Positions 1,001-62,227 of a DNA stretch of 64,000 nt are shown here, piece after piece. The notes under the pieces are model-generated. The model did not search any database, was not told where the DNA came from, and saw nothing but the letters and a program-made list of their open reading frames with translations. Position numbers and translations under genes: made by a program. The first letter of the stretch is position 1. Each line of letters opens with the position of its first letter. The stretch is taken from sequence record NC_041972.1; one strand, given 5' to 3'.

Positions 1001-2689
1001 ATGGACCCGTTGCTCGAAACAGCTATAAAAAATACCATACCAAAAATGAATCCAGATATCTCTAATGGATTTGTAAAGCGAGAGCTAGACAAAGCACTTG
1101 AATATCTCAACAACGTCTTTGCCAGCGCCTTTGGTAGTTTGGGTTCCAACATTAAGTACATCGGGTATCAGCGTTGTCGTCCCGATGAAGAGTACCGTTT
1201 CAGTTTAAAGCGTAATGGCGGGGCAACAGCTTCGAAGGCACGTTATGAGCTGGCCCGGTCTGATGTGTTTCTCACCAAGTTCAACTTCACGGTCGATGGA
1301 AAAGCAACCAAGCCACTGCTGCTCTATGTGCCGTACTGTGATGACACTGGACTAATGCACCTGCGTGGGACAGCACACACCATCTCGCCTGTCTTGGAAG
1401 ATCCAGGGATCTCTGTGACACGGGATGGTTGTTTCTTTCGCGTGACCTGTGACAAGATCGTGGTGAAACGTACTGGCCATACGGTCTGTCGTGATATCAT
1501 GGACATCACACAAAAGCGTAAGCGGGTGCAGAAGCACATCAACGTACCGTGGGCGAAGATCTACCGTGCTAAGCAACAGAAAGCGAACTCAGCGAAGACC
1601 GCACCGGTTACCTCGTTGCCGCACTATCTGTTTGCGAAGTATGGTGTCACGCACACCTTCAAGAAGTATGCCGGTATGGATGTGGTGTTCGGGACTGAGT
1701 TGGATATCACACCTCAGAACTATCCTGACAATGAGTGGACACGGTTCTATTCCGCTAAACAAACCCATCCTAACAACAAGCGTCCGTCCCAAGAGTGGGT
1801 GCCAACGGCTGCAGCGTTAGCTGTCAGAACCACCGCACCGTCTCAGTTGGTGGATATCTTGGTGGCAGGCTACTTCTATGTCGCTGATTGTTATACCCAT
1901 GAATTCAATCCGATTCACTCTGATGAGCCAGATCATTGGCGCCTGATGATGGGTAAGATGGTCTTTAACAAGACGGTCAAGTATGTGCAGATGACAGAAT
2001 ACCTGGCACCGCACTTTGCTTCACTTGATACGTACCTGGACGACATCGCCAAAGAGAACCTGGCCGAAGAAGGGGTGTTGTGTGAAGACGTGTATGAGCT
2101 GATGACTTACATCATTGCGAACCTGGATCACATGATCAACACCGTGAACCTGGCTAGCATGTACAACAAGAAACTCGTTGTATTGCCGTATGTGTTATCA
2201 CCGATCATTCACGGGATCTTCTATACCAAGTTTAACCTGATGCAACAATGCAAGAAGCGTGCTGTTGATACCACCACTGGTGAAGAGATCATGGTGTTCA
2301 CGGAAGACACGTTATTTGATGTTCTTGGACGTAACCTGAAGCCGGAAGCGATTAACAAAGTGAAAGGGCCAGACCATGGCATGATTAGCTCTGTTGCAGC
2401 CCCAGGCGACAATAAGATGTTTAAGATAAATAACAAGATTACACTACAGCAAAATGCAACACAATCAGGTGGGCGTCGTAATGAATCACCGATGACCGAT
2501 GATTCGAAAGGACTGGATGTCAGTATTGCAGACTGTGCATCGTATCTCCATATTACGAAACCCGATCCGACTGGCCGCTCTTTATTTAACCCCTTTAAGT
2601 TATTGGTACGTGATAAACTGCTTCCGTCCGTTAAATATGAAAAACTGTTTAGCGTAACGCAGGCGATTATCTATCGTCGCAATATTTAG
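1001..2689 (+). CDS. Phage non-virion RNA polymerase, beta-like N-terminal subunit (phiKZ gp123-like)
   Basis: 562 aa. HTISPVLEDPG segment and C-terminal SIADCASYLHITKPDPTGRSLFNPF match the recalled pattern of split beta subunits of phiKZ-like RNAPs (equivalent to bacterial beta GRICPIETPEG region). Size fits. Confidence 0.8.
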   Translation: MDPLLETAIKNTIPKMNPDISNGFVKRELDKALEYLNNVFASAFGSLGSNIKYIGYQRCRPDEEYRFSLKRNGGATASKARYELARSDVFLTKFNFTVDGKATKPLLLYVPYCDDTGLMHLRGTAHTISPVLEDPGISVTRDGCFFRVTCDKIVVKRTGHTVCRDIMDITQKRKRVQKHINVPWAKIYRAKQQKANSAKTAPVTSLPHYLFAKYGVTHTFKKYAGMDVVFGTELDITPQNYPDNEWTRFYSAKQTHPNNKRPSQEWVPTAAALAVRTTAPSQLVDILVAGYFYVADCYTHEFNPIHSDEPDHWRLMMGKMVFNKTVKYVQMTEYLAPHFASLDTYLDDIAKENLAEEGVLCEDVYELMTYIIANLDHMINTVNLASMYNKKLVVLPYVLSPIIHGIFYTKFNLMQQCKKRAVDTTTGEEIMVFTEDTLFDVLGRNLKPEAINKVKGPDHGMISSVAAPGDNKMFKINNKITLQQNATQSGGRRNESPMTDDSKGLDVSIADCASYLHITKPDPTGRSLFNPFKLLVRDKLLPSVKYEKLFSVTQAIIYRRNI

Positions 2690-2925: not shown

Positions 2926-5415
2926 ATGAGCAATATGTACCCACCGCAGATGATGATGGCCCAAGGAGGGTTGTATCCTCAGCAAGGGATGTATCCGCAG
3001 CAACAGCAGCAGATGATGCAACCCCCGATGATGATGCAGCAACAAGCTCCACAAATCGATAAGCAAGCTTTAGCACAGGCTTTTGCAAAGTTTATCGATC
3101 AGGCGGCCACGCAGAACCAGAACCAGCTGACTGCCTATATCCACATGCGTTACACACAGAACCAGTATCAGAACCAGCAGTTCCAAACTGCGGTGAACAC
3201 GGTGCTGGCGATGTACATGTTGGCGCTGCAGACAGCCCCTGGTATGCCACCGCATCAACTGCAGGGTCAAGCGGTGGTTGATGCATACGAAATCCACGCC
3301 ATTCTGGAGTTGCAGCAGAACCCCCAGATGGTGCAGGCTTTGGCGCCGAATATCATTCAGGCGCTTGTGCAGAATATCCCGCGCTTACAGCAGCAGTTAA
3401 ATCAAAGCTTCCCGCAGCTGCAGTTGCAAGTACCACAGCTTAATGTTCCGGGTTATCAGCTGCAGAATACCATGCAGCCGCAGCAGCACATGTTGCCTGG
3501 TTATAATGCCATGATGCCACCGATGCAGGGTTATGCACCGGTACCGCAGCAGGGGATGTATCAGAACAGCATGATGCCTGGTCAGCCGTACAATGGTTAT
3601 AACGCGCAGACCAATGATAACCTTGGCATGAGCGATGCCCGTGCTCAGTTACCCGCACCGCCAGCCGATGGTAAGTATTACGGCCCGGCGAGCATCGGTA
3701 ACAACACCGACAACAAACCCGCCAATACCGTGCAGCCTATTGCGGTCGCGGGCTTTGAAGTCAGTGAAGCGCGTGTACCAATGCATGCGGTGGGTGTGTT
3801 GGAAGAGTACAGCACACCTAACCTGCAACAAGCGATGCAACAACAGCAAGACATGCCAATGCCGAGTAACATCGACTTTGACAGTGTGATGTCGCTGGAA
3901 GAGGAAGAGCACGAAGAACCGATGTTCAACATCCCGATGGCGGATGAAGAGCAACTGGTGCTGAATGCGGGTACAGATGCTGGCACGGATGACGAACCGT
4001 ATCAGAGTCCGTTCCCGTCATTCTCTCAGATCTTCGGTCAACCTGCCTCAGGTGCTAACATCAGTGCAGCAGCAGAAGCGGCGATGACACCACCTCCTGC
4101 TGAAGCGTTACTGTCTCAGCCGGTTGCAAACAAACCGACGGTGGTGGTAACCAAAGCTGCTGAAGTGTCACCAGACGGTCTGCCAGATGGCTGGATGTTC
4201 ACTGAGTCGCTGGAAGCCGGTGAGTTCCTGAAGCTGATCCGTGCTGCTAAACGCAATCGTAAGAATCCACTGCCGATTCATTACGACCGTACTTTCATGA
4301 CCCGCTTGTATCGCTATAACCAAGATGGTGCGATTGAGCAACGTATCGTAGGAGAAACCATGGACAGACTTCGTCACGACCTATCCTCACTGGACGAGGT
4401 AGATAACCAAGGGGCACGTGAGCAAGCAGCACTGTTCGCGCCACTGACCACTGCGACTATTGATGAAGTCAATAAGGTAGTGAAGGAAGCAGAGAAAGAC
4501 AGCGGGAAAGTGACTGAGAAGCTGAAAGAGAAAGACATCGTCGTTCTTAGCAAGCCAGTGACTGTATCGTGCCGTCAAGAAGCGGCTATCCTGGTGGCAG
4601 CCAAAGCTGGCGAGATTCAGAAACTCAACAGCAACAAACACGGTTATGAGTACTACTACCGTGAAGCGATGGTGCTGCAAACCACCAAGAACGTGGCAGC
4701 GTTGTTGGAGAACCCAACGGTTAAAGCGTTGTCTCAGCGTTCACAGGTGAACAACCTGGTTGAGCTGGCAGAAGCAATCCGTGCAGCGCGTGCAGAAGGT
4801 GCGTTAAGTCCACAGGCACTGACCAAGCTGACTGACCACATGATGGAAGTGTTTAACGACATGCTCACTCATGATTACGGTTATGCGGGCGAACTGGTGT
4901 TGACCGGTAGCGATGAAGACGGTAACAAAACCCAGCTGGAAGATGAGCTGATGGACTTCGTGGTCTACATGGACAGTAATGAAGATCATCGTGAAGTGCT
5001 CGATCTGATCCATAAGCGTTGGATTCCGCTGCGTGAGCGTCTGTGCATTATCTTAACGGATGGTGCCTTAACCTCCGCGCAACGTATCCTGGCCAAGCGT
5101 TACGGCTCCGACGATGACATGGATGCGATGGTTGATGCGACCAGTAACATGCTGATTGCAATGACCTCGGTTAGCGTAACCAACCTCAACAAAACCAGCC
5201 GTGAGCTGAAGCTTGATGACAAGGACCGTATCTTCGCTGTAAACGCGTCTGACAGCCCGTATCTGTACAGTGTGTTGAAAGGTATCACCGAGCGCACTAA
5301 ACAGCACACATCGCGTTACACGAAGCATCGCGTGGTAACTGCAGATGGTCGCTTCCTGAACTTCCGTCTCGGCGGATTAGGAGACGGCAGTGTCTTCATT
5401 GCCAACTTTGAGTAA
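2926..5415 (+). CDS. Large protein with Q/P/M-rich low-complexity N-terminus, acidic linker and globular C-terminal half
   Basis: 829-aa ORF, AAGGA RBS; polyQ/M/P tracts in the first ~240 aa. Confidence 0.85.
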   Translation: MSNMYPPQMMMAQGGLYPQQGMYPQQQQQMMQPPMMMQQQAPQIDKQALAQAFAKFIDQAATQNQNQLTAYIHMRYTQNQYQNQQFQTAVNTVLAMYMLALQTAPGMPPHQLQGQAVVDAYEIHAILELQQNPQMVQALAPNIIQALVQNIPRLQQQLNQSFPQLQLQVPQLNVPGYQLQNTMQPQQHMLPGYNAMMPPMQGYAPVPQQGMYQNSMMPGQPYNGYNAQTNDNLGMSDARAQLPAPPADGKYYGPASIGNNTDNKPANTVQPIAVAGFEVSEARVPMHAVGVLEEYSTPNLQQAMQQQQDMPMPSNIDFDSVMSLEEEEHEEPMFNIPMADEEQLVLNAGTDAGTDDEPYQSPFPSFSQIFGQPASGANISAAAEAAMTPPPAEALLSQPVANKPTVVVTKAAEVSPDGLPDGWMFTESLEAGEFLKLIRAAKRNRKNPLPIHYDRTFMTRLYRYNQDGAIEQRIVGETMDRLRHDLSSLDEVDNQGAREQAALFAPLTTATIDEVNKVVKEAEKDSGKVTEKLKEKDIVVLSKPVTVSCRQEAAILVAAKAGEIQKLNSNKHGYEYYYREAMVLQTTKNVAALLENPTVKALSQRSQVNNLVELAEAIRAARAEGALSPQALTKLTDHMMEVFNDMLTHDYGYAGELVLTGSDEDGNKTQLEDELMDFVVYMDSNEDHREVLDLIHKRWIPLRERLCIILTDGALTSAQRILAKRYGSDDDMDAMVDATSNMLIAMTSVSVTNLNKTSRELKLDDKDRIFAVNASDSPYLYSVLKGITERTKQHTSRYTKHRVVTADGRFLNFRLGGLGDGSVFIANFE

Positions 5416-8968: not shown

Positions 8969-11344
8969 ATGAATTTAAATGTGGACTATACAATTTACGT
9001 GGATAACACCAAGAAGCTTATCCGCACAATGGTCATTAATTCGGCTCAATCAGCTAATATAATTAACGGCCGTATGGATGGCTTGGGGTACGGTCGTGAC
9101 ATCTACGACAAGAGTACCTGGAAGTACTACATGAACATGGCCGGGATCTACCATCCGTCCAATGACCGGATGCAGGTGAAGTCACTCGATAACGGTCAGC
9201 TCATCGACTTTACCCGTGAGAACATGGAGATCCATGTCAGCACCAAACGCAGCTACCAGTACGGCACCGACTATTATAAAGCCCTGGTTGCGCAGTACCC
9301 GTATCAGATTGCGTTGATCAAGGGGATCTTAAACCCGATTGATCTCAGTGTCTCAACCACCGCCGATGACTGGCAGATCCTCTATTACGATAAGACGCTG
9401 GTAGAAGACGGTGAAGAGAACCTGATCCCCCGTTTCCAGGAGTGGGTCAATACCCTGATCACCCAGACCTATCTACCGGACTACGTCTACATCACCGAAG
9501 ATCTGATGCACCACTTCTATCTTTCCTTAATTGGTGGTTTTGGTCCTGGTGTGATCATGGGGATTCGGTTAGAGAACATCAAGACCAACCGGGCACACAG
9601 TTTCCATATCTGGTCGCATATTCTGTCGCATGCTGATATTGAGCAGTATCGCCCGTACCTGAACCGCAAACAGATCCTCTATCTGTATCGCAACATTGTG
9701 TGGCATACCCGCAACCCAGGTGCACAATACTCCTTCCAGAAGATGATCGATGCCTTCTTAACGGAACGCCGCATCCCATTACAGTCGTACAACGCCCAGC
9801 ACAACACCTCGAGCATTCTGACCAAGATTAAACCCGAGGTGGAGTTCAAGCGTGAACTGCTGAACATGCAAGATGCGATCGCCAATGTGAACTATGTGCG
9901 TAGTACCCGTGAGATCCTGGAAGATGAAGTGCCGCTGGCGAAGAACAACGCCGACGTGTACGAAGACCGGATCGGGGAAGTCATTCAGGATGTCGGGACC
10001 AACCGCAACAGTAACCTCCCGACCAAAGTGCTGGAATCCAACATGCGGGATCTGTCTGACTCGCTGCCGTTCTCACACTCCCTGACATTACTGAACGAAT
10101 GGGTGCGGTTGTCCTCTACGGGCATGTATACCGCGGTGATCACCACTACCAACCCCAATACCGGGCTGACCATGACCATGACGGTAAAGGAAGCGTTTAT
10201 CCTTTATCTGTACGGTGTCTGGCAAAGTCACGGAGTTAACTTGGAGACGATCCCAACCTTCCGTGCCAACATGGTAATGAAGATCCCTCGGCCGCAGTTT
10301 GCGTTCTTAAAAGCCCAATACGGCTCGCAGCACGTCACCGACGAGTTCATCAAATACGCCCTGAATCTTTGTCCGGATATCCCGGCGATCATCTCGACAG
10401 AAACCTTCTATGCGAAGACGCTTGAGATTAATGCCGCGACCCAACTGCACCGGGATCTGTACAGCTACCGTAACCATTATCATGCGCGGGCAGAATTCGA
10501 AGCCCTGGCCTTTGGTTTCTACCAGGATCAGGATTGCGACATCAACTCCGGCATGACCTATAAGGAGTTCTTCAAACAGAAGGGGTGGGACTTCACTGAC
10601 TTACCGCCGGAAGAGTGGGTGGTGTTCGCCAACAAGGTCTCCTCGATTGCCACCGGGTTGGATACGGCTAACCAGCAGAAGCTCGCGGATATTCAGCAAG
10701 CCATGTTGGGCCTGACCATGCAGCTGTCCAGTTACACCATTCAAGTGATCAGGAAGATCAATGAAGAAGCGGTGGTGATGCTTGACTGGCCAACCTTGCG
10801 CGGGGGCGACATGCACATGAAGGTCTATCAGCAGTGGCACTTGGTGGATAACCCTGTGCGACCGATCGATACCCACATGCGTGAGAAGAAGACTTACAAC
10901 CTGATCCACGATTTCCCGAAAGGCCATAACTCGGTAGAGCGCAGCTGGCGCTTCTATATCGACACCGCACGGCAGTTAAGTAGTCAGGGGATCAACTCCC
11001 GTTACAACTATTTAAACGGCGCACGTATGCGGCTGTGGACGGCTGACGATGCGGCGGGTACCGAGAACGAGTTTGACCAGCAGATGGCCGTGAAAGATCT
11101 GCAAGGTCTCTGGATTGACCCGTACGGCGATGCCCGTCCGCCGGCTGACTTCAGTGCAGAAGTGTTGAACGGATTGTGGACTGATCCGTTACCCGGGATT
11201 GCACCAATCGTTAGTAGCTTGGGTGGGTTGTGGATCGATGGTCCAAAGAGCAGTGGTTTTGATGAGGATCTCAACGGACTGCATGCTGAAGTACCTGCGG
11301 CATTACAAGCCTTACGCAATACCCCGGGTGATAGCGCCACGTAA
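8969..11344 (+). CDS. Virion structural protein (phiKZ gp128-like, possibly baseplate)
   Basis: 791 aa from ATG 8969 (GGGAG RBS); divergent from portal; heads a run of structural genes. Confidence 0.6.
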   Translation: MNLNVDYTIYVDNTKKLIRTMVINSAQSANIINGRMDGLGYGRDIYDKSTWKYYMNMAGIYHPSNDRMQVKSLDNGQLIDFTRENMEIHVSTKRSYQYGTDYYKALVAQYPYQIALIKGILNPIDLSVSTTADDWQILYYDKTLVEDGEENLIPRFQEWVNTLITQTYLPDYVYITEDLMHHFYLSLIGGFGPGVIMGIRLENIKTNRAHSFHIWSHILSHADIEQYRPYLNRKQILYLYRNIVWHTRNPGAQYSFQKMIDAFLTERRIPLQSYNAQHNTSSILTKIKPEVEFKRELLNMQDAIANVNYVRSTREILEDEVPLAKNNADVYEDRIGEVIQDVGTNRNSNLPTKVLESNMRDLSDSLPFSHSLTLLNEWVRLSSTGMYTAVITTTNPNTGLTMTMTVKEAFILYLYGVWQSHGVNLETIPTFRANMVMKIPRPQFAFLKAQYGSQHVTDEFIKYALNLCPDIPAIISTETFYAKTLEINAATQLHRDLYSYRNHYHARAEFEALAFGFYQDQDCDINSGMTYKEFFKQKGWDFTDLPPEEWVVFANKVSSIATGLDTANQQKLADIQQAMLGLTMQLSSYTIQVIRKINEEAVVMLDWPTLRGGDMHMKVYQQWHLVDNPVRPIDTHMREKKTYNLIHDFPKGHNSVERSWRFYIDTARQLSSQGINSRYNYLNGARMRLWTADDAAGTENEFDQQMAVKDLQGLWIDPYGDARPPADFSAEVLNGLWTDPLPGIAPIVSSLGGLWIDGPKSSGFDEDLNGLHAEVPAALQALRNTPGDSAT

Positions 11345-14044: not shown

Positions 14045-14914
14045 ATGAACATTCTGGGTAAAGATCCACAACAGTTGATCAAAGAACTCGCTGCCGGTCA
14101 CAACAATGTCACGTTGGTGCCAGGGGCGACGAAAGTGGTTAACTTTCAAAACCTGGCTGGTACGGTTGGTATTGACGCACAGGCGGATATTGTCCCGGCT
14201 GACCCGACCGTCTATTACCGTAAGAAGACCATCCAGTTTGGCAAGATCGATCTGTCCAAGCATTGGTTGAATCAGCGTCTGACGATCCCATTGCAGGCGA
14301 ACTCAACCAGCCACAGCATCTTACCGCAACTGATCAAACGTTATGGTCTGAAACTGTCCACCGACGATTTGGTGTTGACCACGGTAGACACCAGTAAAGA
14401 TATCTGGGAATTACCGATTCGGGTGAAAGCCACCTCGTGGGTCTTTAAGAACACGCTGGACAACATTATCGTCTACGCCACCGATGTCAGCACTGATCTG
14501 CAGTATGTGATCAAACGCCCATCGTTGACTGGGCTGGCGTATCCTTCTGCCGATACCACCAAGATGCAAGGCCCGCTGTTAAGCTACGGTATGCATTACA
14601 GTGTGTATACCGGACAGAACGAAGCTCTCCGCAATGCGAAGGTCGGTTACAAGATGATTGTGGCCTCTGACGATGACTGGGCGATTGCGGATCTGCTGTC
14701 GGACTATACGGGTCTGGCATGGTCGTTTAAACAGACTGGACCAAGCCTGTACAATGCCGAAGTGATGTATAATGGTGTTGCAACGAATGTACCGAGCACC
14801 TATTCCCATCTTGATCGCAATAGCGCCACGAACTTCTTAATTCTGAAGCTCAGTGGTGTTGGTGATGTGGGCGGGTATGTTGCTATTGGTTACACAATCG
14901 AAGTTGATCCGTAG
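14045..14914 (+). CDS. Putative baseplate/tail structural protein, paralog 3
   Basis: FGKIDL, KRYGLKL, LYNAEVMYNG motifs shared with 11424 and 12315. Confidence 0.6.
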   Translation: MNILGKDPQQLIKELAAGHNNVTLVPGATKVVNFQNLAGTVGIDAQADIVPADPTVYYRKKTIQFGKIDLSKHWLNQRLTIPLQANSTSHSILPQLIKRYGLKLSTDDLVLTTVDTSKDIWELPIRVKATSWVFKNTLDNIIVYATDVSTDLQYVIKRPSLTGLAYPSADTTKMQGPLLSYGMHYSVYTGQNEALRNAKVGYKMIVASDDDWAIADLLSDYTGLAWSFKQTGPSLYNAEVMYNGVATNVPSTYSHLDRNSATNFLILKLSGVGDVGGYVAIGYTIEVDP

Positions 14915-14927
14915 CAGTGTATAAATG

Positions 14928-14953
14928 AAGGGTGGGGCTTCGGCTCTGCCCTT
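14928..14953 (+). terminator. Hairpin between structural gene and ruvC
   Basis: AAGGGTGGGGC-TTCG-GCTCTGCCCTT; no U-tract, followed directly by the next RBS. Confidence 0.5.
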
Positions 14954-14963
14954 AGGGAGTCTT

Positions 14964-15569
14964 ATGATGGTGTTGCAAGATGGACGCCCGGTGGAAGAGT
15001 TACTGCAGGTCTCCATTGACCCCGGAACCGATACCGTCGGTGTTACGTTATTGGGATTGCATCCGATCACCCTTGAGATGACCTGGAAGGAATCCTTTAC
15101 GTTGTATGGATCATTGCTTAATTACCGCTCAGAGCTCGTGTTCCAGGAAGACCGGAATCGTGATGCACGTTTAAAGGGCCTCACTGATGCCCTGCTGCGT
15201 TATCTCTGTACGGTACGGCCTCACGTAGTGGTGTTTGAAGATAACTTCTTACGTCACTCCCCACAGGCCTTTAAAGCACTGATCGAATCGGTGGAAGCCA
15301 TTAAGCGTGCAGTCTGGGGGTATAACCCATACTTACCGTTCTATGAGATCTCGCCGATGCAGGCGAAAGGTGCCGTGAACGCGATTGCTCCTCGCGGACA
15401 AAAACATGATAAGGAGCTAGTGCGTAAGGGACTGATGAACTATCCACGTTTACAAATCCCTCATGCTGTTTTGCAGACACTCTCTGAGCACGCAGTTGAC
15501 TCCGTCGCCATCGGCATCTACGGCCTGGAACAATTGTCGCTCGCATTGAGTGCTGCTCATTGGAGATAA
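14964..15569 (+). CDS. ruvC: RuvC-like Holliday junction resolvase
   Basis: SIDPGT (Asp), VVFEDNF (Glu), EHAVDSVAIG (His/Asp) catalytic pattern; GGGAG RBS before ATG 14964. Confidence 0.85.
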   Translation: MMVLQDGRPVEELLQVSIDPGTDTVGVTLLGLHPITLEMTWKESFTLYGSLLNYRSELVFQEDRNRDARLKGLTDALLRYLCTVRPHVVVFEDNFLRHSPQAFKALIESVEAIKRAVWGYNPYLPFYEISPMQAKGAVNAIAPRGQKHDKELVRKGLMNYPRLQIPHAVLQTLSEHAVDSVAIGIYGLEQLSLALSAAHWR

Positions 15570-53652: not shown

Positions 53653-54204
53653 ATGGAAAAGATTACGAGTGATACGATCCTTGCTAAGTTACGTGAGGTG
53701 GCAGAAACAAACAAAGAAAACCAACATCGGAAACTCCGCTCAATAAGCCAAACCATGGCGTACAACATTGAAGCGATCGTCGAGTTGATTGCGTTATCGG
53801 GTGAGATGTACCTTGATCTGCTTGATCGACACAAGGTTGATGAGATTATAGAACCGCATTACAAAGGCAATCAACGGGCTTACAGTCGATTGAGCCATAC
53901 CGCCTCTATTCACACGGGCATGGAGTACCTTGCCGGCAACGCGCACATCTACACCAACGATGAGGGTAAAGAAGCAGTACGAATCGTCTGCACCTTTAAG
54001 TTTAAGCGCGACTTCCTGCAACCTAGCTTATTACCTAAGGTACTTCACTACTGTCTGCAGGAGCTTAAGCCGCAACTTGGTGACAGTGGTGTTGTCCACT
54101 TCCGCACACAGGGTGAGCTGGAACCCCCTCATCTTAAAGCCATTCCGGGCTGGCACGTCGACGCTAACGTCCGTGATAACTCCATTGTCATTAGTTTACG
54201 TTAA
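53653..54204 (+). CDS. Hypothetical protein
   Basis: 183 aa, GGAG RBS. Confidence 0.7.
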   Translation: MEKITSDTILAKLREVAETNKENQHRKLRSISQTMAYNIEAIVELIALSGEMYLDLLDRHKVDEIIEPHYKGNQRAYSRLSHTASIHTGMEYLAGNAHIYTNDEGKEAVRIVCTFKFKRDFLQPSLLPKVLHYCLQELKPQLGDSGVVHFRTQGELEPPHLKAIPGWHVDANVRDNSIVISLR

Positions 54205-54214
54205 GGAACCAAAC

Positions 54215-54925
54215 ATGATCGTTGTTGTTGTTGATACTGAATCGACTGCTTTGGATGAGCTCGCGGGTATTCTGAGTTTGTCCGCTATTCGCACTAACGT
54301 GGCTGACATGAGTTGCATTAAGCACCTGATCGGCGTGCACCAAGCCGGCAAGACGCATGACGACATCTTCCATGCCGTATTGAACCTCAATGAACAATAC
54401 GTGATGGGTCGTACCTTCTTGCAAAGCACGCAGGATTGGTGGATGAAGAAAACCACCCCGGCGGCGAAGGCTTCAGTAACCGGACCAACGCAGTCTGCAA
54501 AAGATGCTTTGACAGCATTTGTGGTTTTCATCGAAAAGGCCATTGAGGCGACGATTAACGAACGCGGGGAGAAAGCGAAGGTCCAGCTGTACTACCGTGG
54601 CGACTTCGATGCTAAAGCCATTGCGTCCCTGGCAAAAGCGGTGGGTGTTGAACTCCCGTATATTTTCAATCAGAACAAAGAAATCCGCACATATATCGAT
54701 GCCAAGCTGGACACGGATATCGGTTATATCCCGTGGCTCGGTTACCCAGAAGGACTGGGGCGCCATAGCTCACTCGATGATGTTCTAATCGATGGCTTCG
54801 AGATGGCGGTGGCCTATCGCATCAATCACCTCGAAAAGTTCGATAAAAAGTCGGTGCCGGGCGAGATCGCCAAACTGAAAGAAACGTACCCTGTTCCGGA
54901 GAAAACCCATGCAAAATCTAAATGA
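54215..54925 (+). CDS. DEDDh 3'-5' exonuclease (T4 DexA-like)
   Basis: AAGGA RBS at ATG 54215; VVVDTEST (ExoI), GDFDAKAI (ExoII), EIRTY, HSSLDD (ExoIII). Confidence 0.8.
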   Translation: MIVVVVDTESTALDELAGILSLSAIRTNVADMSCIKHLIGVHQAGKTHDDIFHAVLNLNEQYVMGRTFLQSTQDWWMKKTTPAAKASVTGPTQSAKDALTAFVVFIEKAIEATINERGEKAKVQLYYRGDFDAKAIASLAKAVGVELPYIFNQNKEIRTYIDAKLDTDIGYIPWLGYPEGLGRHSSLDDVLIDGFEMAVAYRINHLEKFDKKSVPGEIAKLKETYPVPEKTHAKSK

Positions 54926-55631
54926 CCGTATCTTTGCCAATTATGATGGTTACATTGAAGCTATTGATGCACATTTTAAACCTACCTATCAACTGCAGCT
55001 GGCTGAGCAAGTCATCCCGGTTGAGCAGATGGACAAGCTTGTAACCTGGATGGACCACAACGCCCATGTCAAGGGCACAACCGTCTACCTGATGGAGTTG
55101 GTGCCTGATCTCGATAAACCGCATCCTGCACAATCAGAGATGCGTGTGTTTATTGCACTCGGTATGTTTAATCGTGAAGTCAACCCTGATTTGCCTTACT
55201 GGTGTCATGTACATCGCCATTACCCGGTTAACCTCGCTGTCGACTTGATTGTTACTGACCTGCAGGGCGTTCCTGTAACCCATGCCGTTCTGACTGCGTT
55301 TAAGTCATTTGATCGAGCGCGTACCTACAGGGATAATCTCGGCGGCAAAGGTGGGCATCAACCGCATCACGAAATCCATACTGGCATTATTGACCAAAGT
55401 GGTAAGGTGATCTTCGAAACCTACGGGAATATCAACTGGTATACCAAGAATGCCATTCGCCTGCTGGCTGAACGACAGATCTTGCAGGAAGACACTGAAC
55501 TGTCGGCAATCTGGTTACTGGCTGGTTTAAAAGCGGGTGTTAACTGGAAAGTCGAAGACCATGTTGACATCATGAAAGCAATCGATACTTTCCGTCCGAG
55601 GAATACCCATGATTTTAACGGCTATGTTTAA
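54909..55631 (+). CDS. Hypothetical protein
   Basis: 240 aa, overlaps upstream gene end. Confidence 0.65.
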   Translation: MQNLNDRIFANYDGYIEAIDAHFKPTYQLQLAEQVIPVEQMDKLVTWMDHNAHVKGTTVYLMELVPDLDKPHPAQSEMRVFIALGMFNREVNPDLPYWCHVHRHYPVNLAVDLIVTDLQGVPVTHAVLTAFKSFDRARTYRDNLGGKGGHQPHHEIHTGIIDQSGKVIFETYGNINWYTKNAIRLLAERQILQEDTELSAIWLLAGLKAGVNWKVEDHVDIMKAIDTFRPRNTHDFNGYV

Positions 55632-56373
55632 GAAGTGCTTTGGCGCGTCGTCTGTCTATAAAGAAGATGATGGCAGTACACGCATTACCGCTGACCAGTA
55701 TGAACTTACGCTGGGTCGATCCTACCATCCTAAGCTCAAGCGTAAGGTGGGTCGGGGATTTGGCTTCTATGTCGAAAATGGCGAGAAGCTCGAGTTCGTC
55801 TTGCGGGGTTACTGGTTTGTGTTGATCGCCTGGAGCAAGAAGCGCAAATCACTCAAGTGGGACGAAGCGGAGAATGCACCGACCTACGGCTTCAATGTTG
55901 TTGACTCTGACTTAGCGATCTATCTCGGCAACGAATCCGCTAAGTCAGACAAACACATCAGCATGCGTAGTCGCAGCAAATACATCCCCCTGCCCTGGGC
56001 CTGGACCTTCCATAAGCGTGAAGTGTTAACCACCCGTGACACCTGGGCTGATGTCAAAGAAGGTGCGTTGTCTCAAGAGTGGTCGTTCCCCGCCACATAC
56101 GTCACCAAGCACAATGAAGTGCAAGAGATGATGATCGAAGCGAAGATGGAGCGCATGACCTGGCGCCTGGCATGGCTCCCTTGGTTCGTACCGGTTACCA
56201 AGAAAGACCGCTCGGCGAGTTACAAGTACCACGGGAACGGTGGTAACGGGGTTGGTCACGACGCCAGTGGCTGGAAAGGCGGGGTCATCGGTGGCGGGGT
56301 CATCATGCGAGACAATGAACACAACCCGAAAGAAACATTCGACCGTTTAATTAAAGAGCAGCATTACGGCTAA
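55624..56373 (+). CDS. Hypothetical phage protein
   Basis: Trp-rich; C-terminal SGWKGGVIGGG motif. Confidence 0.65.
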   Translation: MFKKCFGASSVYKEDDGSTRITADQYELTLGRSYHPKLKRKVGRGFGFYVENGEKLEFVLRGYWFVLIAWSKKRKSLKWDEAENAPTYGFNVVDSDLAIYLGNESAKSDKHISMRSRSKYIPLPWAWTFHKREVLTTRDTWADVKEGALSQEWSFPATYVTKHNEVQEMMIEAKMERMTWRLAWLPWFVPVTKKDRSASYKYHGNGGNGVGHDASGWKGGVIGGGVIMRDNEHNPKETFDRLIKEQHYG

Positions 56374-57969: not shown

Positions 57970-58003
57970 ATTAAGTTTTTAACAAAGTTTACTGCAGATC
58001 TTT

Positions 58004-58020
58004 TCAGACCTATATCACGT
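58004..58020 (+). promoter_or_regulatory. Candidate phage early promoter TCAGACCTATATCACGT
   Basis: 15/17 identical to 40041-40057; TATATCAC is one mismatch from phiKZ TATATTAC. Confidence 0.6.
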
Positions 58021-58067
58021 CGGTGAATAACCTTTCACTAATTAACCAATCCGTAAGGAGTTTTATC

Positions 58068-59444
58068 ATGGCTGCATTAAAATCTAAAGTTGAACTGTTT
58101 CACTGGTATCAGGAACTGAAAACTGAATTTAAAACCGGCAAGATTACCGTGTTCGAATTTGAGCGGCAAGTGCTCAGCGAAATTCTTTCCCTGACCGATA
58201 CTGGTAAAACACCATCTACTGCCAAAATCAGTCTGGTAGTGGACATCCTTAATTCTGTGGTTTTTGATCATGTGTTTACCGCAGACGGTATCATTGACCT
58301 GGACAACATGCTCGCTCGTGAACACGTACGCAACATTTCGGAATTGACGGCAGCACGCAATAACTTTATTACCATACAAGCCCAGGCCCGTCTGAACAAA
58401 GAAAAGGAACAGACTGCGAAACCAGCAGAGCAGAAGGCGTTTGCCAAGTTTCCAACGAAAGAAGAGCTCGAATATTGGGTTAATGCCAGAAAGCTATTCC
58501 GTTATGGTAACCCCAATACGCTCGGCACTGAAGCATACCAGGAGGTTGTCAAATACTGGCATCTGGTCGATAAATATCTGGGTACATTAAAACTGGAACT
58601 GGATCACACCGACCCTAACTACGTCGATAACATCCTGTTGATTGACTACTTTGTATCGTTGGTCGCCAAGCAAGAGGTTCCTGAGGAAGAACGCAGGCAT
58701 CTGAAAGACACACTTAGCAGTCTATATGCGTGCCCCATTAAAACCCCACACATCGATGCATTTGTCGAACGTGACCAACACCCCCTTCCAGTTAAGCCAA
58801 AACAACCACCCATCGCGCAACAAGCCATCGACCGCGCTATTGCCTGGCGTGAAGAGGAAACCAAAACAAACCATCAGCAAAAAGACATATTACGAGAATT
58901 CGCCGATCAATACTGTCCGGTAATGGTGGCCAAGCAACATGCCACTCAGCAGTTGTTTGATTTCGTTGCTCGTGCGGTGAAACGTGTCTTGACCGCCATT
59001 GCTCAGCCAAACAACCCGGAAGACGCCGAGATGCTGGCAAAAGGTCATGCCATCAACATTCTCAATGTTAAGCATGGTGTAATTGGTGTCAGTACCACGA
59101 TTACCAGAAACGGTCTGGTCAAGTTACGCATCTTCGCTGAACGTGAACTATGTAACGAGGACTACGGTATTCCGACTCTGTCGTATAATCAAGTCCGTCA
59201 ATCACCTCATGCAACGTTCAGCATACCAATGCCGGCACTGATAGATGGGTTCATTAACATGTGGGATATCCCTAATCAGGCCCCTCGCCATATGCATAAT
59301 AGCGTAGGCGGTATGTTGGGTAATCCCTATCCGTTACAGCAGCTTGATGGTTTGATGTCAGCTATTGCAAGAGAAACAGCCGAGTACGGCGTTACGCCTA
59401 CTTATGGCATGATCGAAGACAGCATGATTGTTGTGCTGCATTAA
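58068..59444 (+). CDS. Hypothetical multi-domain protein; shares helical modules with 59508
   Basis: AAGGAG RBS at ATG 58068; 458 aa. Confidence 0.7.
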   Translation: MAALKSKVELFHWYQELKTEFKTGKITVFEFERQVLSEILSLTDTGKTPSTAKISLVVDILNSVVFDHVFTADGIIDLDNMLAREHVRNISELTAARNNFITIQAQARLNKEKEQTAKPAEQKAFAKFPTKEELEYWVNARKLFRYGNPNTLGTEAYQEVVKYWHLVDKYLGTLKLELDHTDPNYVDNILLIDYFVSLVAKQEVPEEERRHLKDTLSSLYACPIKTPHIDAFVERDQHPLPVKPKQPPIAQQAIDRAIAWREEETKTNHQQKDILREFADQYCPVMVAKQHATQQLFDFVARAVKRVLTAIAQPNNPEDAEMLAKGHAINILNVKHGVIGVSTTITRNGLVKLRIFAERELCNEDYGIPTLSYNQVRQSPHATFSIPMPALIDGFINMWDIPNQAPRHMHNSVGGMLGNPYPLQQLDGLMSAIARETAEYGVTPTYGMIEDSMIVVLH

Positions 59445-59451
59445 TTCACAC

Positions 59452-59480
59452 GGGGAGGTTTCCCTCCCCCTTTTATTTTT
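59452..59480 (+). terminator. Rho-independent-type terminator
   Basis: GGGGAGG-TTTC-CCTCCCC followed by CTTTTATTTTT. Confidence 0.75.
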
Positions 59481-59507
59481 TAATTAACCTACTGTGAGAA
59501 TTTAACC

Positions 59508-60209
59508 ATGAACAAAGAAACTTATACTACCTGGTACAATGGATTAAAAGAAAGATTGGCGACTGGGCACATTAATCAAGAACACTACGAGACACTTATT
59601 GTTGACAATCTAAGTTCATTGATTACTCATTTCTTCAATAGTCGATACGACGATGGTCATATGTCTCTGGAGGAGCATTTTGCGTTAGTTAATCATTATT
59701 TCGAACTGGTTGCTGATGCAGAAATATCAGAACGCAGTGCCATGCTCATGGTACGTTCTGTAGCTAGCAGTATTCAAAAGCTACCAGCGGCTAAAGCCTT
59801 CGCAGAGAAACATAACACTCCGGCGCCGTCAATTAAAGAAATTCTTGGTAGTCGACCTGGTTTACTGCGTAAGCATGCTGCCAGCACGACCGAGAAGATG
59901 ATAGGGTGTCCGGTGATCACCCAGGCCAACGAACCTGAGAACGAAGTAACCATTGACTTACCCTGGAAATTGGCATTGCACGTTTACAAAGGGTTCCTGG
60001 TAAAGGCGCTGATGTCAAAGCACGGATATAAATACAGTGATGCGTATAACTACATTACTGATCATCAGAACAAATACGACGAACTCTTGGCAGAAGTCCT
60101 CAACAACATTATTGCTAATGAGGAATCGCATCTGGTGTCGGTAGGTGGCGGCATCACTGCAGCGGGTACTGGTCTGGTGGTAAGCGGGATTATTAAGCCG
60201 GAGGAGTGA
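59508..60209 (+). CDS. Chimeric protein: helical N-module plus RNAP beta'-like fragment (aa ~108-203)
   Basis: SIKEILGSRPGLLRKH..GCPVIT..IDLPWKLALHVYK.FLVKALM parallels beta' [38 protein letters not shown]. Confidence 0.6.
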   Translation: MNKETYTTWYNGLKERLATGHINQEHYETLIVDNLSSLITHFFNSRYDDGHMSLEEHFALVNHYFELVADAEISERSAMLMVRSVASSIQKLPAAKAFAEKHNTPAPSIKEILGSRPGLLRKHAASTTEKMIGCPVITQANEPENEVTIDLPWKLALHVYKGFLVKALMSKHGYKYSDAYNYITDHQNKYDELLAEVLNNIIANEESHLVSVGGGITAAGTGLVVSGIIKPEE

Positions 60210-60769
60210 TGAAAGGAGAGATAGAGACACGCTTCAGAAGACACTACGGCAACCACATTAAACGGGGTAGTGATATCGCAGTGCCTTTATACCACATTAG
60301 TCTACAGAATGACTTGGAGGGGCTATGGCGACCTAAAGCCCCTGACTCGCCATTTGATATTCCGAAGAAACCCAACATCATTACTGAAATGCCGCTCCCG
60401 CGTATCTGTGTAGCACCATCTATCGAACAGTGCTTCTGGGCAATCTATCCCAATATCTCTAAGCTCTTTGAAGAGGAAGAATACGCAGCGGTTTGTTTTG
60501 CGGTTTATCAACCGATTCTGCATGCCGGTATTGCTGTCGTGGATACCAGTACGTTAACGCAATGCCGACTAGTGCACGATGCACATATTACCGGCGAGCA
60601 TTGGTTACTTAGTGATACCACCATGTGTGTGATCGACTTTATTCAGGTTAATAACACCTCACACGGCGAGTTCGTAAAGTTCCATCCGTTTAATACCCCG
60701 GTTGGTAACGAATGGGAGCTCGCCCCTAAAAATGTTGTTTATCATTCACTTAAATTAACGGAGTTGTAA
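60206..60769 (+). CDS. Hypothetical protein, possible ADP-ribosyltransferase-like fold
   Basis: LYHIS, RICVAPS, DAHITGEHW. Confidence 0.5.
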   Translation: MMKGEIETRFRRHYGNHIKRGSDIAVPLYHISLQNDLEGLWRPKAPDSPFDIPKKPNIITEMPLPRICVAPSIEQCFWAIYPNISKLFEEEEYAAVCFAVYQPILHAGIAVVDTSTLTQCRLVHDAHITGEHWLLSDTTMCVIDFIQVNNTSHGEFVKFHPFNTPVGNEWELAPKNVVYHSLKLTEL

Positions 60770-60773
60770 ATCC

Positions 60774-61418
60774 ATGGTAACTGCTAGAAAAGCTAATAAG
60801 ACCTTAGGTGAGCACGCAGTGGCTCATGAGGCAGTAACACGCTTAGGTAGCAACAAGAAAGTCAAACCAGTTAAACCGCTTTGGACACTGGAGAACATCG
60901 AGGACAATCTGGTTGGTCAAGGCATCCTTGCCTACTTGAAACGCCACACGTCGTTATCGATCCGTGATATCAACACCGCGGCTAACCGCCTGACGAAGAT
61001 TGCTGATTCAGATATAAAGGAAGGGAAAGCGCGTGATTACGTGGCACGAGTTATTGGGTACAACAATTACGACGCTCTCAACGTCACCGTTCGTGCAGCG
61101 GTACCTGTGCGCAATCATGTACAACGTCGTAAAGCAAATCAGCCGGTCACAGAGTTGTTGATAGAAGACGAAGAACTGCCGCCGGTAACACGTACTGAAA
61201 TCAACCCCTTGGTGATGTTAGCCCTACAGCGTGAGATCTCTAAACGCGGCTTTCGTCTACTGGGTAAGAACTACCGGGCTTTCGTTAACAAGGATAACCC
61301 CGAGCACACCTTTACGTTGATGCAGGCGTATAACTACCTTGCCAAACAACTGGGTTATCCGGATTATCACTCTATGCCCCGTCAATACCCAATCATTAAC
61401 TTGCGCTACGTCGATTAA
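60774..61418 (+). CDS. Hypothetical protein with two copies of a small helical domain
   Basis: ARDYVARVIGYNNYDAL and AYNYLAKQLGYPDYHSM; GGAG RBS. Confidence 0.65.
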   Translation: MVTARKANKTLGEHAVAHEAVTRLGSNKKVKPVKPLWTLENIEDNLVGQGILAYLKRHTSLSIRDINTAANRLTKIADSDIKEGKARDYVARVIGYNNYDALNVTVRAAVPVRNHVQRRKANQPVTELLIEDEELPPVTRTEINPLVMLALQREISKRGFRLLGKNYRAFVNKDNPEHTFTLMQAYNYLAKQLGYPDYHSMPRQYPIINLRYVD

Positions 61419-61440
61419 CCTATTGTAAGGAATAAAGAAC

Positions 61441-62190
61441 ATGACAACGACTTTCCCGAAAGAGATGAATGCTGCTTTCCATCCTGATAACGAACAAACC
61501 ACCCAGCTGTGCAAAACGATCCAGCAGATCAGCGGGGTGGAGATCAAACGTGTACATGTGGTGATGGCGATCCACCATTACAAACAAAACGATGCGGCAC
61601 ATCAGCCTGACCACATGCTGGCGGTCTTAGCAGAAGCAGCCCACATCATCCAGTCGTTTCCTGACCTGGAGAAATGGCGCACCCAGATCATGTTAGGGTG
61701 TCTGTTCCATGACACCCACTGTCACATCGATCGGGATATGCACCACCTGCTAGGCGCCGAACATGCTCAAGAGGCATTACTGGAGTATGCGTGTGGTTAT
61801 GGGATGTCACGTGCGGATGTCTACCTGATCAGTCAGGCCGTGCTGGAGCATCGGGCTTCCTGGAAGTACCCGCGTATTAACCCTGTATCCAACGCTGTGG
61901 CGTCTGCAGATCGTGGCTACCCTGATCTAAAGAAATACATCCGTCGTGCTGTACAGTACCGTTACAAGCGCACGGCAGTCATCAACATGAACACCATCAT
62001 CGATGAGTCGATCGAGCACATGGTAGAGAAGTTCGGGGATGGCGGTTATGCCTGGGAGAGCTACCCGACATATGCGGCAGTGATGCACGGTGATGCGATC
62101 CAACAAGTGAAGCAACAACTGCGCAGTAAAGAAGGAAAGGCGCAACTCAAAGAGTACGCTGAACTCCACTTTGATGAGTGGGTAGAGTAA
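61441..62190 (+). CDS. HD-domain phosphohydrolase
   Basis: DHMLAV, CLFHD, HHLLGA, EHRAS, SADRG metal-binding pattern. Confidence 0.8.
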   Translation: MTTTFPKEMNAAFHPDNEQTTQLCKTIQQISGVEIKRVHVVMAIHHYKQNDAAHQPDHMLAVLAEAAHIIQSFPDLEKWRTQIMLGCLFHDTHCHIDRDMHHLLGAEHAQEALLEYACGYGMSRADVYLISQAVLEHRASWKYPRINPVSNAVASADRGYPDLKKYIRRAVQYRYKRTAVINMNTIIDESIEHMVEKFGDGGYAWESYPTYAAVMHGDAIQQVKQQLRSKEGKAQLKEYAELHFDEWVE

Positions 62191-62198
62191 GCTACGTG

Positions 62199-62227
62199 GC
62201 CGGAGGATTACCTCCGGCTGTTATGCC
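62199..62227 (+). terminator. Hairpin + TGTTATGCC element
   Basis: GCCGGAGG-ATTA-CCTCCGGC-TGTTATGCC. Confidence 0.7.

Follow-up and report, generated by a model that had tools for sequence, protein, structure and literature searches.

The split, sigma-embedded RNA polymerases (RNAPs) of nucleus-forming jumbo phages are enzymes whose assembly, import, and regulation are only now being worked out. The closest described relative of the protein reported here is gp55 of phage phiKZ (spliced gp55/gp56.1; PDB 7OGP and 8QUE), whose family of non-virion RNAP (nvRNAP) subunits is approximately 420-510 aa in length and carries a Zn ribbon, a clamp, and the RNPSL and DFDGD motifs. In this study, we analyzed a stretch of 64,000 nucleotides (hereafter referred to as the window) of the genome of Erwinia phage Deimos-Minion (NC_041972.1), in which window coordinates are identical to genome coordinates (positions 58000-62200 were compared and showed 100% identity), and focused on the gene gp73 (59508..60209, + strand), which appears in the list of open reading frames (ORFs) with a product of 233 aa and is annotated in GenBank as a hypothetical protein. 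Residues 108-206 of gp73 are homologous to residues 290-385 of phiKZ gp55, with 'PW' included, whereas gp73 has neither the Zn ribbon and the clamp nor the two motifs. gp73 further differs from phiKZ gp55 in that it is 233 aa rather than approximately 490-510 aa long and has another N-terminal domain and an invariant tail of its own, and its gene is not located beside that of chimallin.

The N-terminal beta' subunit (beta'N) of the AR9/PBS1-type nvRNAP (PDB 7S00 and 7S01) is a full catalytic subunit, which gp73 matches as a fragment. Homology to the bacterial beta' subunit encoded by rpoC (approximately residues 330-420 in Escherichia coli, comprising switch 2, the start of the double-psi beta-barrel (DPBB), and the dock) is transitive through the phage beta'N family, and the helical insert of gp73 corresponds to that of phage nvRNAP rather than to the dock of bacteria (Iyer et al. 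2021, PMC7824862). In its proposed action, gp73 resembles small RNAP-binding regulators encoded by phages and nvRNAP cofactors such as Imp7 of phiKZ, which are lineage-restricted and control the assembly, import, or activity of RNAP (bioRxiv 10.64898/2026.09.21.753271). However, cofactors of the Imp7 type are unrelated in sequence and not derived from a polymerase, unlike gp73, whose contact with RNAP is a proposal.

The homology itself has been recorded before. The legend of Fig. 2 in Prichard et al. 2023 gives Goslar gp188 and phiKZ gp055 as homologous to RAY gp223 and gp070 (PMC10299810), and RAY gp070 is 100% identical to gp73. In addition, AH06 gp78, which is 55% identical to gp73, is annotated as 'RNA polymerase subunit beta prime', an overstated label that would better read 'beta-prime-like fragment, non-catalytic'. 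An earlier sequence-only reading of the window had interpreted gp73 as a stand-alone piece of beta' fused to a carrier module and had added that no such protein had been described, which was too strong given these two records. No truncated extra beta' paralogue is described in Sokolova et al. 2020, Iyer et al. 2021, or the literature searched; the truncation, fusion architecture, tail, and non-catalytic nature of gp73 are undescribed. The evolutionary interpretation of that reading is largely right. The best explanation of gp73 is a neofunctionalized, non-catalytic paralogue of the nvRNAP beta' N-terminal subunit, and its features suggest that it is probably a polymerase 'look-alike' regulator.

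The beta'-homologous segment of gp73

gp73 has a PHROG family of its own (phrog_11276, E = 8e-160, residues 1-233). In the PHROG scan, residues 54-205 also matched phrog_2987 ('RNA polymerase beta subunit', the phiKZ gp55 family) with an E-value of 4.1e-17 at profile positions 226-368 of 478. A phmmer search against PDB aligned gp73 aa 111-204 with phiKZ gp55 292-385 (7ogp_A, E = 1.6e-5), and a profile of 12 gp73 family members matched gp55 290-385 with an E-value of 6e-10 and AR9 nvRNAP beta' with approximately 8e-5 over gp73 aa 53-209. Cellular beta' was marginal with the same profile, the E-values being 0.16 for the cyanobacterial gamma subunit and 0.53 for bacterial beta' (339-429 against gp73 aa 113-203). 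The remark in the sequence-only reading that gp73 resembles phiKZ-type beta' more closely than the bacterial form was borne out, and the register that it had proposed against bacterial beta' also holds, though the direct similarity is marginal. When the gp73 family was compared by hhalign with 69 full-length beta'N proteins, a probability of 99.5% and an E-value of 7.7e-23 were obtained over 96 columns, corresponding to residues 111-205 of gp73 and 290-385 of gp228, the complete beta'N of this genome; the profile match on which the beta' interpretation depended is therefore significant. A hidden Markov model (HMM) built from the 69 beta'N proteins scored gp73 at 88 bits. An exhaustive search with a profile among 1.8 billion representative proteins gave 228 matches at E<=1e-3, most of them in proteins of 420-510 aa and at approximately residues 260-370. 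The homology breaks off sharply at aa 206. These results confirm that the similarity of gp73 to beta' is far beyond chance.

Codon 108 of gp73 begins at base 59829, and the ORF was correctly placed by the earlier reading with respect to strand, length, and this residue. The segment delimited by hhalign, the beta'N HMM, and the phiKZ gp55 match (aa 108-206) accordingly spans 59829..60125 on the + strand. Invariant within the gp73 family are G118, R121, P135-V136-I137, and L151-P152-W153. The basic residues equivalent to GKRVD in beta' are replaced by STTEK, in agreement with the decay that had been noticed from the letters. The invariant Arg of the beta' 'GR.VIT' motif is retained in 8 of the 12 aligned sequences, including that of AH06, and is replaced by Cys in Deimos-Minion, P0001, and P0003 and by Gln in P0004.

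The extent of the segment was compared with the structure of phiKZ gp55, in which the clamp is formed by residues 1-291 and the catalytic DFDGD lies at 417-421 (PMC7618050). The match of gp73 begins right after the clamp and ends approximately 30 residues before the DFDGD loop. Three elements are retained: the switch-2 stretch, the first half of the DPBB with its initial strands and helix (PVIT...LPWKLALHVY), and a helical insert that, according to Iyer et al. 2021 (PMC7824862), is peculiar to nvRNAP beta'. Hence, the 'switch-2/clamp' label given to the segment earlier stands for switch 2 and has to be adjusted for the clamp, because the equivalent of gp55 1-291 is missing. In the beta'N family, C72, C74, C87, and C90 of the Zn ribbon are invariant or nearly so; gp73 has one Cys and nothing that aligns with positions 1-250 of the beta'N HMM, and no four-Cys Zn ribbon or clamp. 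R396, N397, P398, N433, D435, D437, and G438 are likewise invariant or nearly so in beta'N and are present in gp228. gp73 ends 27 residues past the homologous segment and has neither RNPSL nor NADFDGD, the absence of the latter having been reported correctly before. gp73 cannot polymerize RNA, and together with the profile matches and the separate full-length gp228, this bears out the description of a stand-alone non-catalytic fragment.

These losses bear on the idea that gp73 is a swap-in subunit that takes the place of part of beta'N when an active polymerase passes from one stage to the next. In line with this idea, the RNAPs of jumbo phages already consist of several separate polypeptides (PMC7598289), but an enzyme using gp73 in place of gp228 would be left without a catalytic loop, as well as without the Zn ribbon, the clamp, and RNPSL. 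Because everything needed for catalysis is missing, a swap-in role is very unlikely, and we leave it next to no probability.

Conservation inside the gp73 family is highest in the DPBB strands, the helix, and the insert (PVIT, LPW.ALHVY.GFLVK.L..KH), and lowest in the switch-2 loop that contacts nucleic acid, where insertions and deletions occur. From the alignment, this pattern fits a kept protein-protein surface rather than DNA binding.

Deimos-Minion is a 273.5-kb Agricanvirus, a nucleus-forming jumbo phage that infects Erwinia amylovora, and it encodes the nuclear shell protein (gp227) and the PhuZ tubulin (gp215), which places it in the nucleus-forming Chimalliviridae. All of the split polymerase genes are present in its genome: gp2, gp159, gp169, gp170, gp228, gp254, gp255, and gp276. 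Of these, gp228 (495 aa), located directly after the shell gene gp227, encodes a complete catalytic nvRNAP beta'N with the Zn ribbon and NADFDGD; it matched phiKZ gp55 (7OGP chain A) with an E-value of 1.6e-67 with NADFDGD aligned, and phrog_2987 from end to end with an E-value of 1.2e-197. The orthologue of gp228 in RAY is gp223, which localizes to the phage nucleus together with the other nvRNAP subunits gp002, gp248, and gp249 (PMC10299810). gp2 (window 1001-2689, +), annotated as 'polymerase', had no Pfam match and appears, from its position and number alone, to be the counterpart of RAY gp002, which is nvRNAP beta subunit 1 according to Prichard et al. 2023 (PMC10299810).

When all stop-to-stop ORFs of the genome were scanned with the beta'N HMM, gp228 scored 513 bits, gp73 88 bits, and gp169 weakly at 12.6 bits, and no other ORF of the genome was matched, near gp73 or elsewhere. 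Since there are no other local pieces and the neighbors gp72 and gp74 are unrelated to beta'N, gp73 is not a shard of a locally broken gene. We considered gp74 as the second half of the barrel, from the resemblance by eye of 'VHDAHITGEHW' to 'NADFDGDQM', and gp72 as the missing clamp and Zn-ribbon part; both were rejected, the hhalign comparison with beta'N giving a probability of 0.1% and an E-value of 0.41 for gp74, and an E-value of 0.22 for gp72, which has no Zn-binding Cys pattern.

Over the shared segment, gp73 and gp228 are approximately 22% identical, by which gp228 ranks 63rd of the 69 beta'N. In a FastTree phylogeny of the beta' segment, whose 100 columns place the true origin beyond its resolution, the gp73 clade formed a long branch apart from gp228. 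The long separate branch and the low identity speak against a recent duplication of gp228 within the genome. The 'PW' of beta'N, with Trp in at least 90% of the 69 proteins, is kept in every member of the gp73 family, and residue 334 of gp228 (locus L004, 35519-37006) is Arg ('PR'). Four short matches in the search, P0013, P0016, P0018, and P0041 (214-309 aa), were examined as stand-alone analogues of gp73 in other phage groups and rejected, as RNPSL is retained in all four; P0013, P0018, and P0041 break at or near 'NAD', as expected of real subunits that are split by an intron or truncated by a contig end.

Domain architecture, distribution, and selection

The N-terminal module of gp73 (aa 1-105, 59508..59822, +) was delimited by AlphaFold2 (AF2), hhalign, and an HMM of the module. 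In the AF2 model, aa 1-110 are all-helical with a predicted local distance difference test (pLDDT) score of mostly 76-94. By hhalign, AH06 gp76 aligned with the gp73 family over aa 1-87 (probability 93%, E = 2.6e-7), and the N-module HMM matched AH06 gp76 with an E-value of 7e-8. In four genomes, this HMM also matched the gp72 orthologues at their N-termini, with E-values ranging from 3e-6 to 6.5e-3; the best of these matches, in the contig L012, extended over HMM positions 3-79. In Deimos-Minion itself, gp72 aa 24-57 matched gp73 aa 5-38 with an E-value of approximately 1e-3 in both hmmsearch and hhalign. These paralogues, gp72 and AH06 gp76, bear differing C-terminal parts. The 'carrier module' of the sequence-only reading is thus a real unit: the N-terminal 105 aa or so form a separate helical domain common to AH06 gp76 and the gp72 orthologues. 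Residues 54-105 may also be collinear with the beta'N helices upstream of switch 2, a weak indication given by the PHROG and AR9 alignments, which start at aa 53-54.

Downstream of the beta' segment, gp73 ends in a Gly-rich tail of 27 residues, SHLVSVGGGITAAGTGLVVSGIIKPEE (aa 207-233, 60126..60206, +), which was defined by the family alignment and a codon comparison. Almost every residue of the tail is identical across the gp73 family. In five sequences compared, the third codon position differs in 21 of the 27 codons; as the residues are identical despite these changes, the tail is under constraint at the protein level. This most constrained part of gp73 had not been picked out in the earlier reading, and it does not align with the beta'N HMM. 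We also tried to read the tail as a diverged 'RNPSL...ITKVK' strand pair of the DPBB, but no alignment with the beta'N HMM was obtained even with the filters off, and the resemblance exists by eye only. In L012 (Logan SRR18087984 contig, 288 kb), the homologue P0007 (6001-6813) runs 30 residues past the usual end, '...IKPAIPDFDGAAVSDEEMLAILNKVNKTGE', and this extension is partly charged. Its '...PDFDGA...' was considered as a relic of the catalytic loop, which is likewise unsupported, as it does not align with the beta'N HMM either.

The composition of the tail raises the question of a membrane anchor, in which the Gly/Ala/Val-rich tail would form a small-xxx-small transmembrane helix in the cell membrane or in that of early-infection vesicles. 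The tail is hydrophobic, is located at the extreme C-terminus, and has the small residues G214, A218, G222, and S226 in the corresponding spacing. On the other hand, its maximum Kyte-Doolittle hydropathy over 19 aa is 1.48, under the customary transmembrane threshold of approximately 1.6, AF2 predicts no helix there (pLDDT <30), and P0007 has its 30 additional, partly charged residues beyond it. We therefore regard tail anchoring as highly unlikely.

The gp73 family consists of 12 distinct sequences with 55-100% identity and 66 invariant columns, and forms one 50%-identity cluster in the representative library. Eleven clusters of homologues, from Erwinia phages and from contigs no longer than 288 kb, are 55-98% identical to gp73. 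Its members occur in Erwinia Agricanvirus genomes or similar metagenomic contigs only, the longest of which are 225-290 kb. No disruption of the ORF was seen in any of the 17 phage records or in the approximately ten metagenomic relatives, so its presence in relatives, on which the earlier reading had made its case depend, was found.

The gp73 proteins of Deimos-Minion and Special G share 72.5% identity, compared with 97-99% for the neighboring genes. The divergence is limited to codons 11-135 (59538..59912, +, in the window and 3031-3405 in the Special G locus L007), a mosaic patch for which Special G and Ea35-70 carry an allele divergent from that of Deimos-Minion. One recombination breakpoint lies close to codon 10, and the other close to where the conserved PVIT strand begins. 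The synonymous divergence (dS) of the patch is saturated at 1.5-2.3, compared with approximately 0.1 in the rest of gp73 and 0.02-0.13 in the flanking genes, and the ratio of nonsynonymous to synonymous substitution (omega) in the patch is 0.13-0.38. Positive selection was considered as the cause of the low identity to Special G and Ea35-70 and was rejected; because dS is saturated and omega is below 0.4, the low identity reflects allele replacement by recombination. These values indicate that codons 11-135 represent an old recombined allele under purifying selection. For gp73, omega was 0.13-0.45, and the neutral evolution that would have spoken against the earlier reading was not seen.

These data also bear on the view of gp73 as a decaying, functionless remnant of a second beta'N gene. 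gp73 is indeed a fragment from which the catalytic and nucleic-acid-binding residues have gone. However, the ORF is intact throughout the phage records and metagenomic relatives, omega is well below 1 even in the patch with saturated synonymous sites, the tail is invariant despite synonymous turnover, and no other beta'N remnants lie nearby. The selection data effectively refute this view, to which we assign only a trace of probability.

Apart from the phage genomes, decayed Agricanvirus-like DNA was observed in a 4.7-Mb contig with 41% GC and retroelement genes (GCA_054859325.1, JBTAPL010000082.1, 10620-28064 reversed; locus L010). Within positions 9290-10036 and 14857-15076 of this locus, gp73 is represented by its last 51 codons (69% identity), gp75 by a frameshifted copy, and gp76 by its start. 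An RVT_1/Phage_integrase element interrupts the phage-like DNA, and P0012, a gene model of several exons, runs across the gp73 tail. P0012, which has only the tail in common with gp73, was rejected as an independent user of the tail, since it was modelled on decayed phage sequence within a large contig of non-phage origin. Either this DNA was acquired horizontally by a non-phage genome, or it is an artefact of assembly.

Proposed role of gp73 as a polymerase mimic

We tentatively propose that gp73 binds an RNAP partner by subunit mimicry and thereby controls a phage polymerase, a possibility whose chance we put at somewhat less than even. In this proposal, the beta' core piece would dock on a contact of beta'N, namely the beta-like DPBB subunit, beta'C, or the sigma-like fifth subunit, and the N-terminal module and the tail would contribute another activity or another contact. 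In this way, gp73 would control the assembly, import, or activity of a multisubunit phage RNAP. An inhibitory, dominant-negative effect on polymerases with a canonical beta'N surface, e.g., those of co-infecting chimalliviruses, would be favored; alternatively, gp73 could control the timing of the phage's own enzyme.

Several observations were counted in favor of mimicry, among them the secure homology of aa 108-206 to beta'N, the selection acting on the family, the conservation pattern of a protein-protein surface, and the location of the gene in the variable accessory region with its recombined allele. The edges of the segment fit the structural boundaries of phiKZ gp55, and gp228 is intact elsewhere in the genome. 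gp73 keeps 'PW' as opposed to the 'PR' of gp228, and most foreign beta'N are closer to gp73 than gp228 is. It has been reported that import recognizes nvRNAP once its assembly is at least partly complete, and that lineage-specific cofactors are used (bioRxiv 10.64898/2026.09.21.753271). Because nvRNAP is assembled before import with such cofactors, there is a cytoplasmic step that would be open to a mimic.

Other observations weigh against this proposal. The overall pLDDT of the AF2 model of gp73 is 70.8, and aa 116-150 fall below 50, so the beta' segment is only partly confident. A Foldseek search of the model against PDB gave no significant match; chains of phiKZ and AR9 beta' surfaced with insignificant E-values of 0.24-1.3, although the probabilities for phiKZ gp55 reached 0.8-0.99. 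The partial DPBB of gp73 may not fold by itself. The essential activity may lie elsewhere in the protein, because the most constrained element, the tail, is not derived from beta'. The gp68-gp55 interface in phiKZ is small, at 446 Å^2 (supplement of PMC8287921). In addition, it is a guess whether gp73 inhibits or helps and whether its target is self or non-self.

A more specific form of the proposal is that gp73 is a dominant-negative mimic that targets the nvRNAP of competing nucleus-forming phages, either by inserting into the enzyme or by sequestering one of its subunits (or acts likewise on its own enzyme, as a timing brake), with gp228 immune because it has diverged at the mimicked surface through the change from PW to PR. 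We consider this form unlikely. If true, evolution would have produced in gp73 a fragment of a subunit that poisons a multisubunit RNAP in virus-virus competition. More generally, binding to a polymerase partner would make gp73 a rare natural case of regulation by a subunit fragment, and if it binds none, half of a double-psi beta-barrel module would have been exapted for a new role. In either case, gp73 offers a handle on the control of polymerase assembly or on phage-phage interference, and RAY, with its identical gp070, is a model chimallivirus with published microscopy tools.

Neighboring genes and alternative roles

gp72 (58023..59444, +), which contains the copy of the N-terminal module at its N-terminus, is separated from gp73 by a strong terminator-like GC hairpin followed by a T-run (59452..59479, +). 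The hairpin, GGGGAGG-TTTC-CCTCCCC, has a seven-pair stem with 6 GC pairs and is followed by CTTTTATTTT. This arrangement suggests that gp73-gp76 form a transcription unit apart from gp72. gp74 (60209..60769, +) overlaps the end of gp73 by TGATG, and the gp73-terminal GGAGGAG lies just upstream of the gp74 ATG; gp73 is translationally coupled to, and co-translated with, gp74. Special G, AH06, and L012 keep both the adjacency and the TGATG overlap, and L013 comes close, with a 105-aa ORF between the two homologues.

The AF2 model of gp74 is confident (pLDDT 87). Its fold family is phage-specific, uncharacterized, and widespread in jumbo phages, with BFVD matches down to 2e-16 in Eowyn, Noxifer, Ea35-70, SL2, and others. 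Among the relatives of gp74, residues R65, S84, and E130 are invariant, and the motif 'LVHDAH.T.E' (HDAH) is present. The best Foldseek matches in PDB were chains with an ADP-ribosyltransferase (ART) fold of the R-S-E type, none of them significant (E = 0.087-0.7, TM-score of approximately 0.3-0.4), and no match was found in Pfam or NCBIfam. One member of the fold family is fused to an acetyltransferase. The scans of Pfam, NCBIfam, and PHROG gave no informative match for gp72, gp74, or gp75.

The coupling to gp74 allows a different reading, in which the beta' piece is reused as a structural scaffold only, the N-terminal module and the tail act, and gp73 is a partner, regulator, or adaptor of gp74, itself an enzyme-like alpha/beta protein of a possible ADP-ribosyltransferase-type fold. 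Besides the preserved gene pair, this reading is favored by the origin of the tail and the N-terminal module outside beta', with the tail being the most conserved part, by the occurrence of the module in gp72 and AH06 gp76 with other C-terminal parts, and by the invariant residues, confident fold, and weak ART-like matches of gp74. However, the pair is split by the 105-aa ORF in L013, the gp74 fold occurs in Eowyn and Noxifer, where the searches run showed no stand-alone gp73-like fragment, and the ART likeness is not significant (E = 0.087) and has no Pfam match. Moreover, the beta' segment is itself strongly conserved in the gp73 family. We regard scaffold reuse as rather doubtful, but as the strongest rival of mimicry, ahead of the decoy, membrane-anchor, remnant, and swap-in readings.

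The region around gp73 is a variable accessory block. gp69 (55609-56373, +), annotated as a hypothetical protein and located three genes upstream of gp72, is a full-length homologue of Acb3, an inhibitor of the cyclic oligonucleotide-based antiphage signaling system (CBASS) (PF25187, E = 6.6e-63), and gp67 (54173-54925) is an Rv2179c-like 3'-5' exoribonuclease. An accessory location near Acb3 and a recombined divergent allele are typical of conflict-related genes. gp73 could be a defence decoy that imitates a part of the polymerase and engages a bacterial immune sensor or effector aimed at the phage nvRNAP beta'. The proximity to Acb3 and other takeover or counter-defence genes, the swapping of alleles between near-identical genomes, and the conservation of surface helices rather than catalytic residues are in line with such a decoy. 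Nevertheless, gp73 would be a poor mimic of gp228 with approximately 22% identity to the phage's own beta'N, and no defence-related family was matched in Pfam/NCBIfam, PADLOC not having been searched. To our knowledge, no defence system that targets a jumbo-phage RNAP is known. A decoy function is therefore distinctly unlikely.

The order of thymidylate synthase, gp71, gp72, and gp73 is conserved in Special G, AH06, L012, and L013. In AH06 (locus L008, 775-2769 and 4702-5960), an HNH homing endonuclease interrupts the gene for thymidylate synthase (AH06_70, AH06_72, and AH06_73), and the arrangement of the locus also differs, with the additional N-module paralogue gp76 and the gp75 homologue gp77 located between the homologues of gp72 and gp73.

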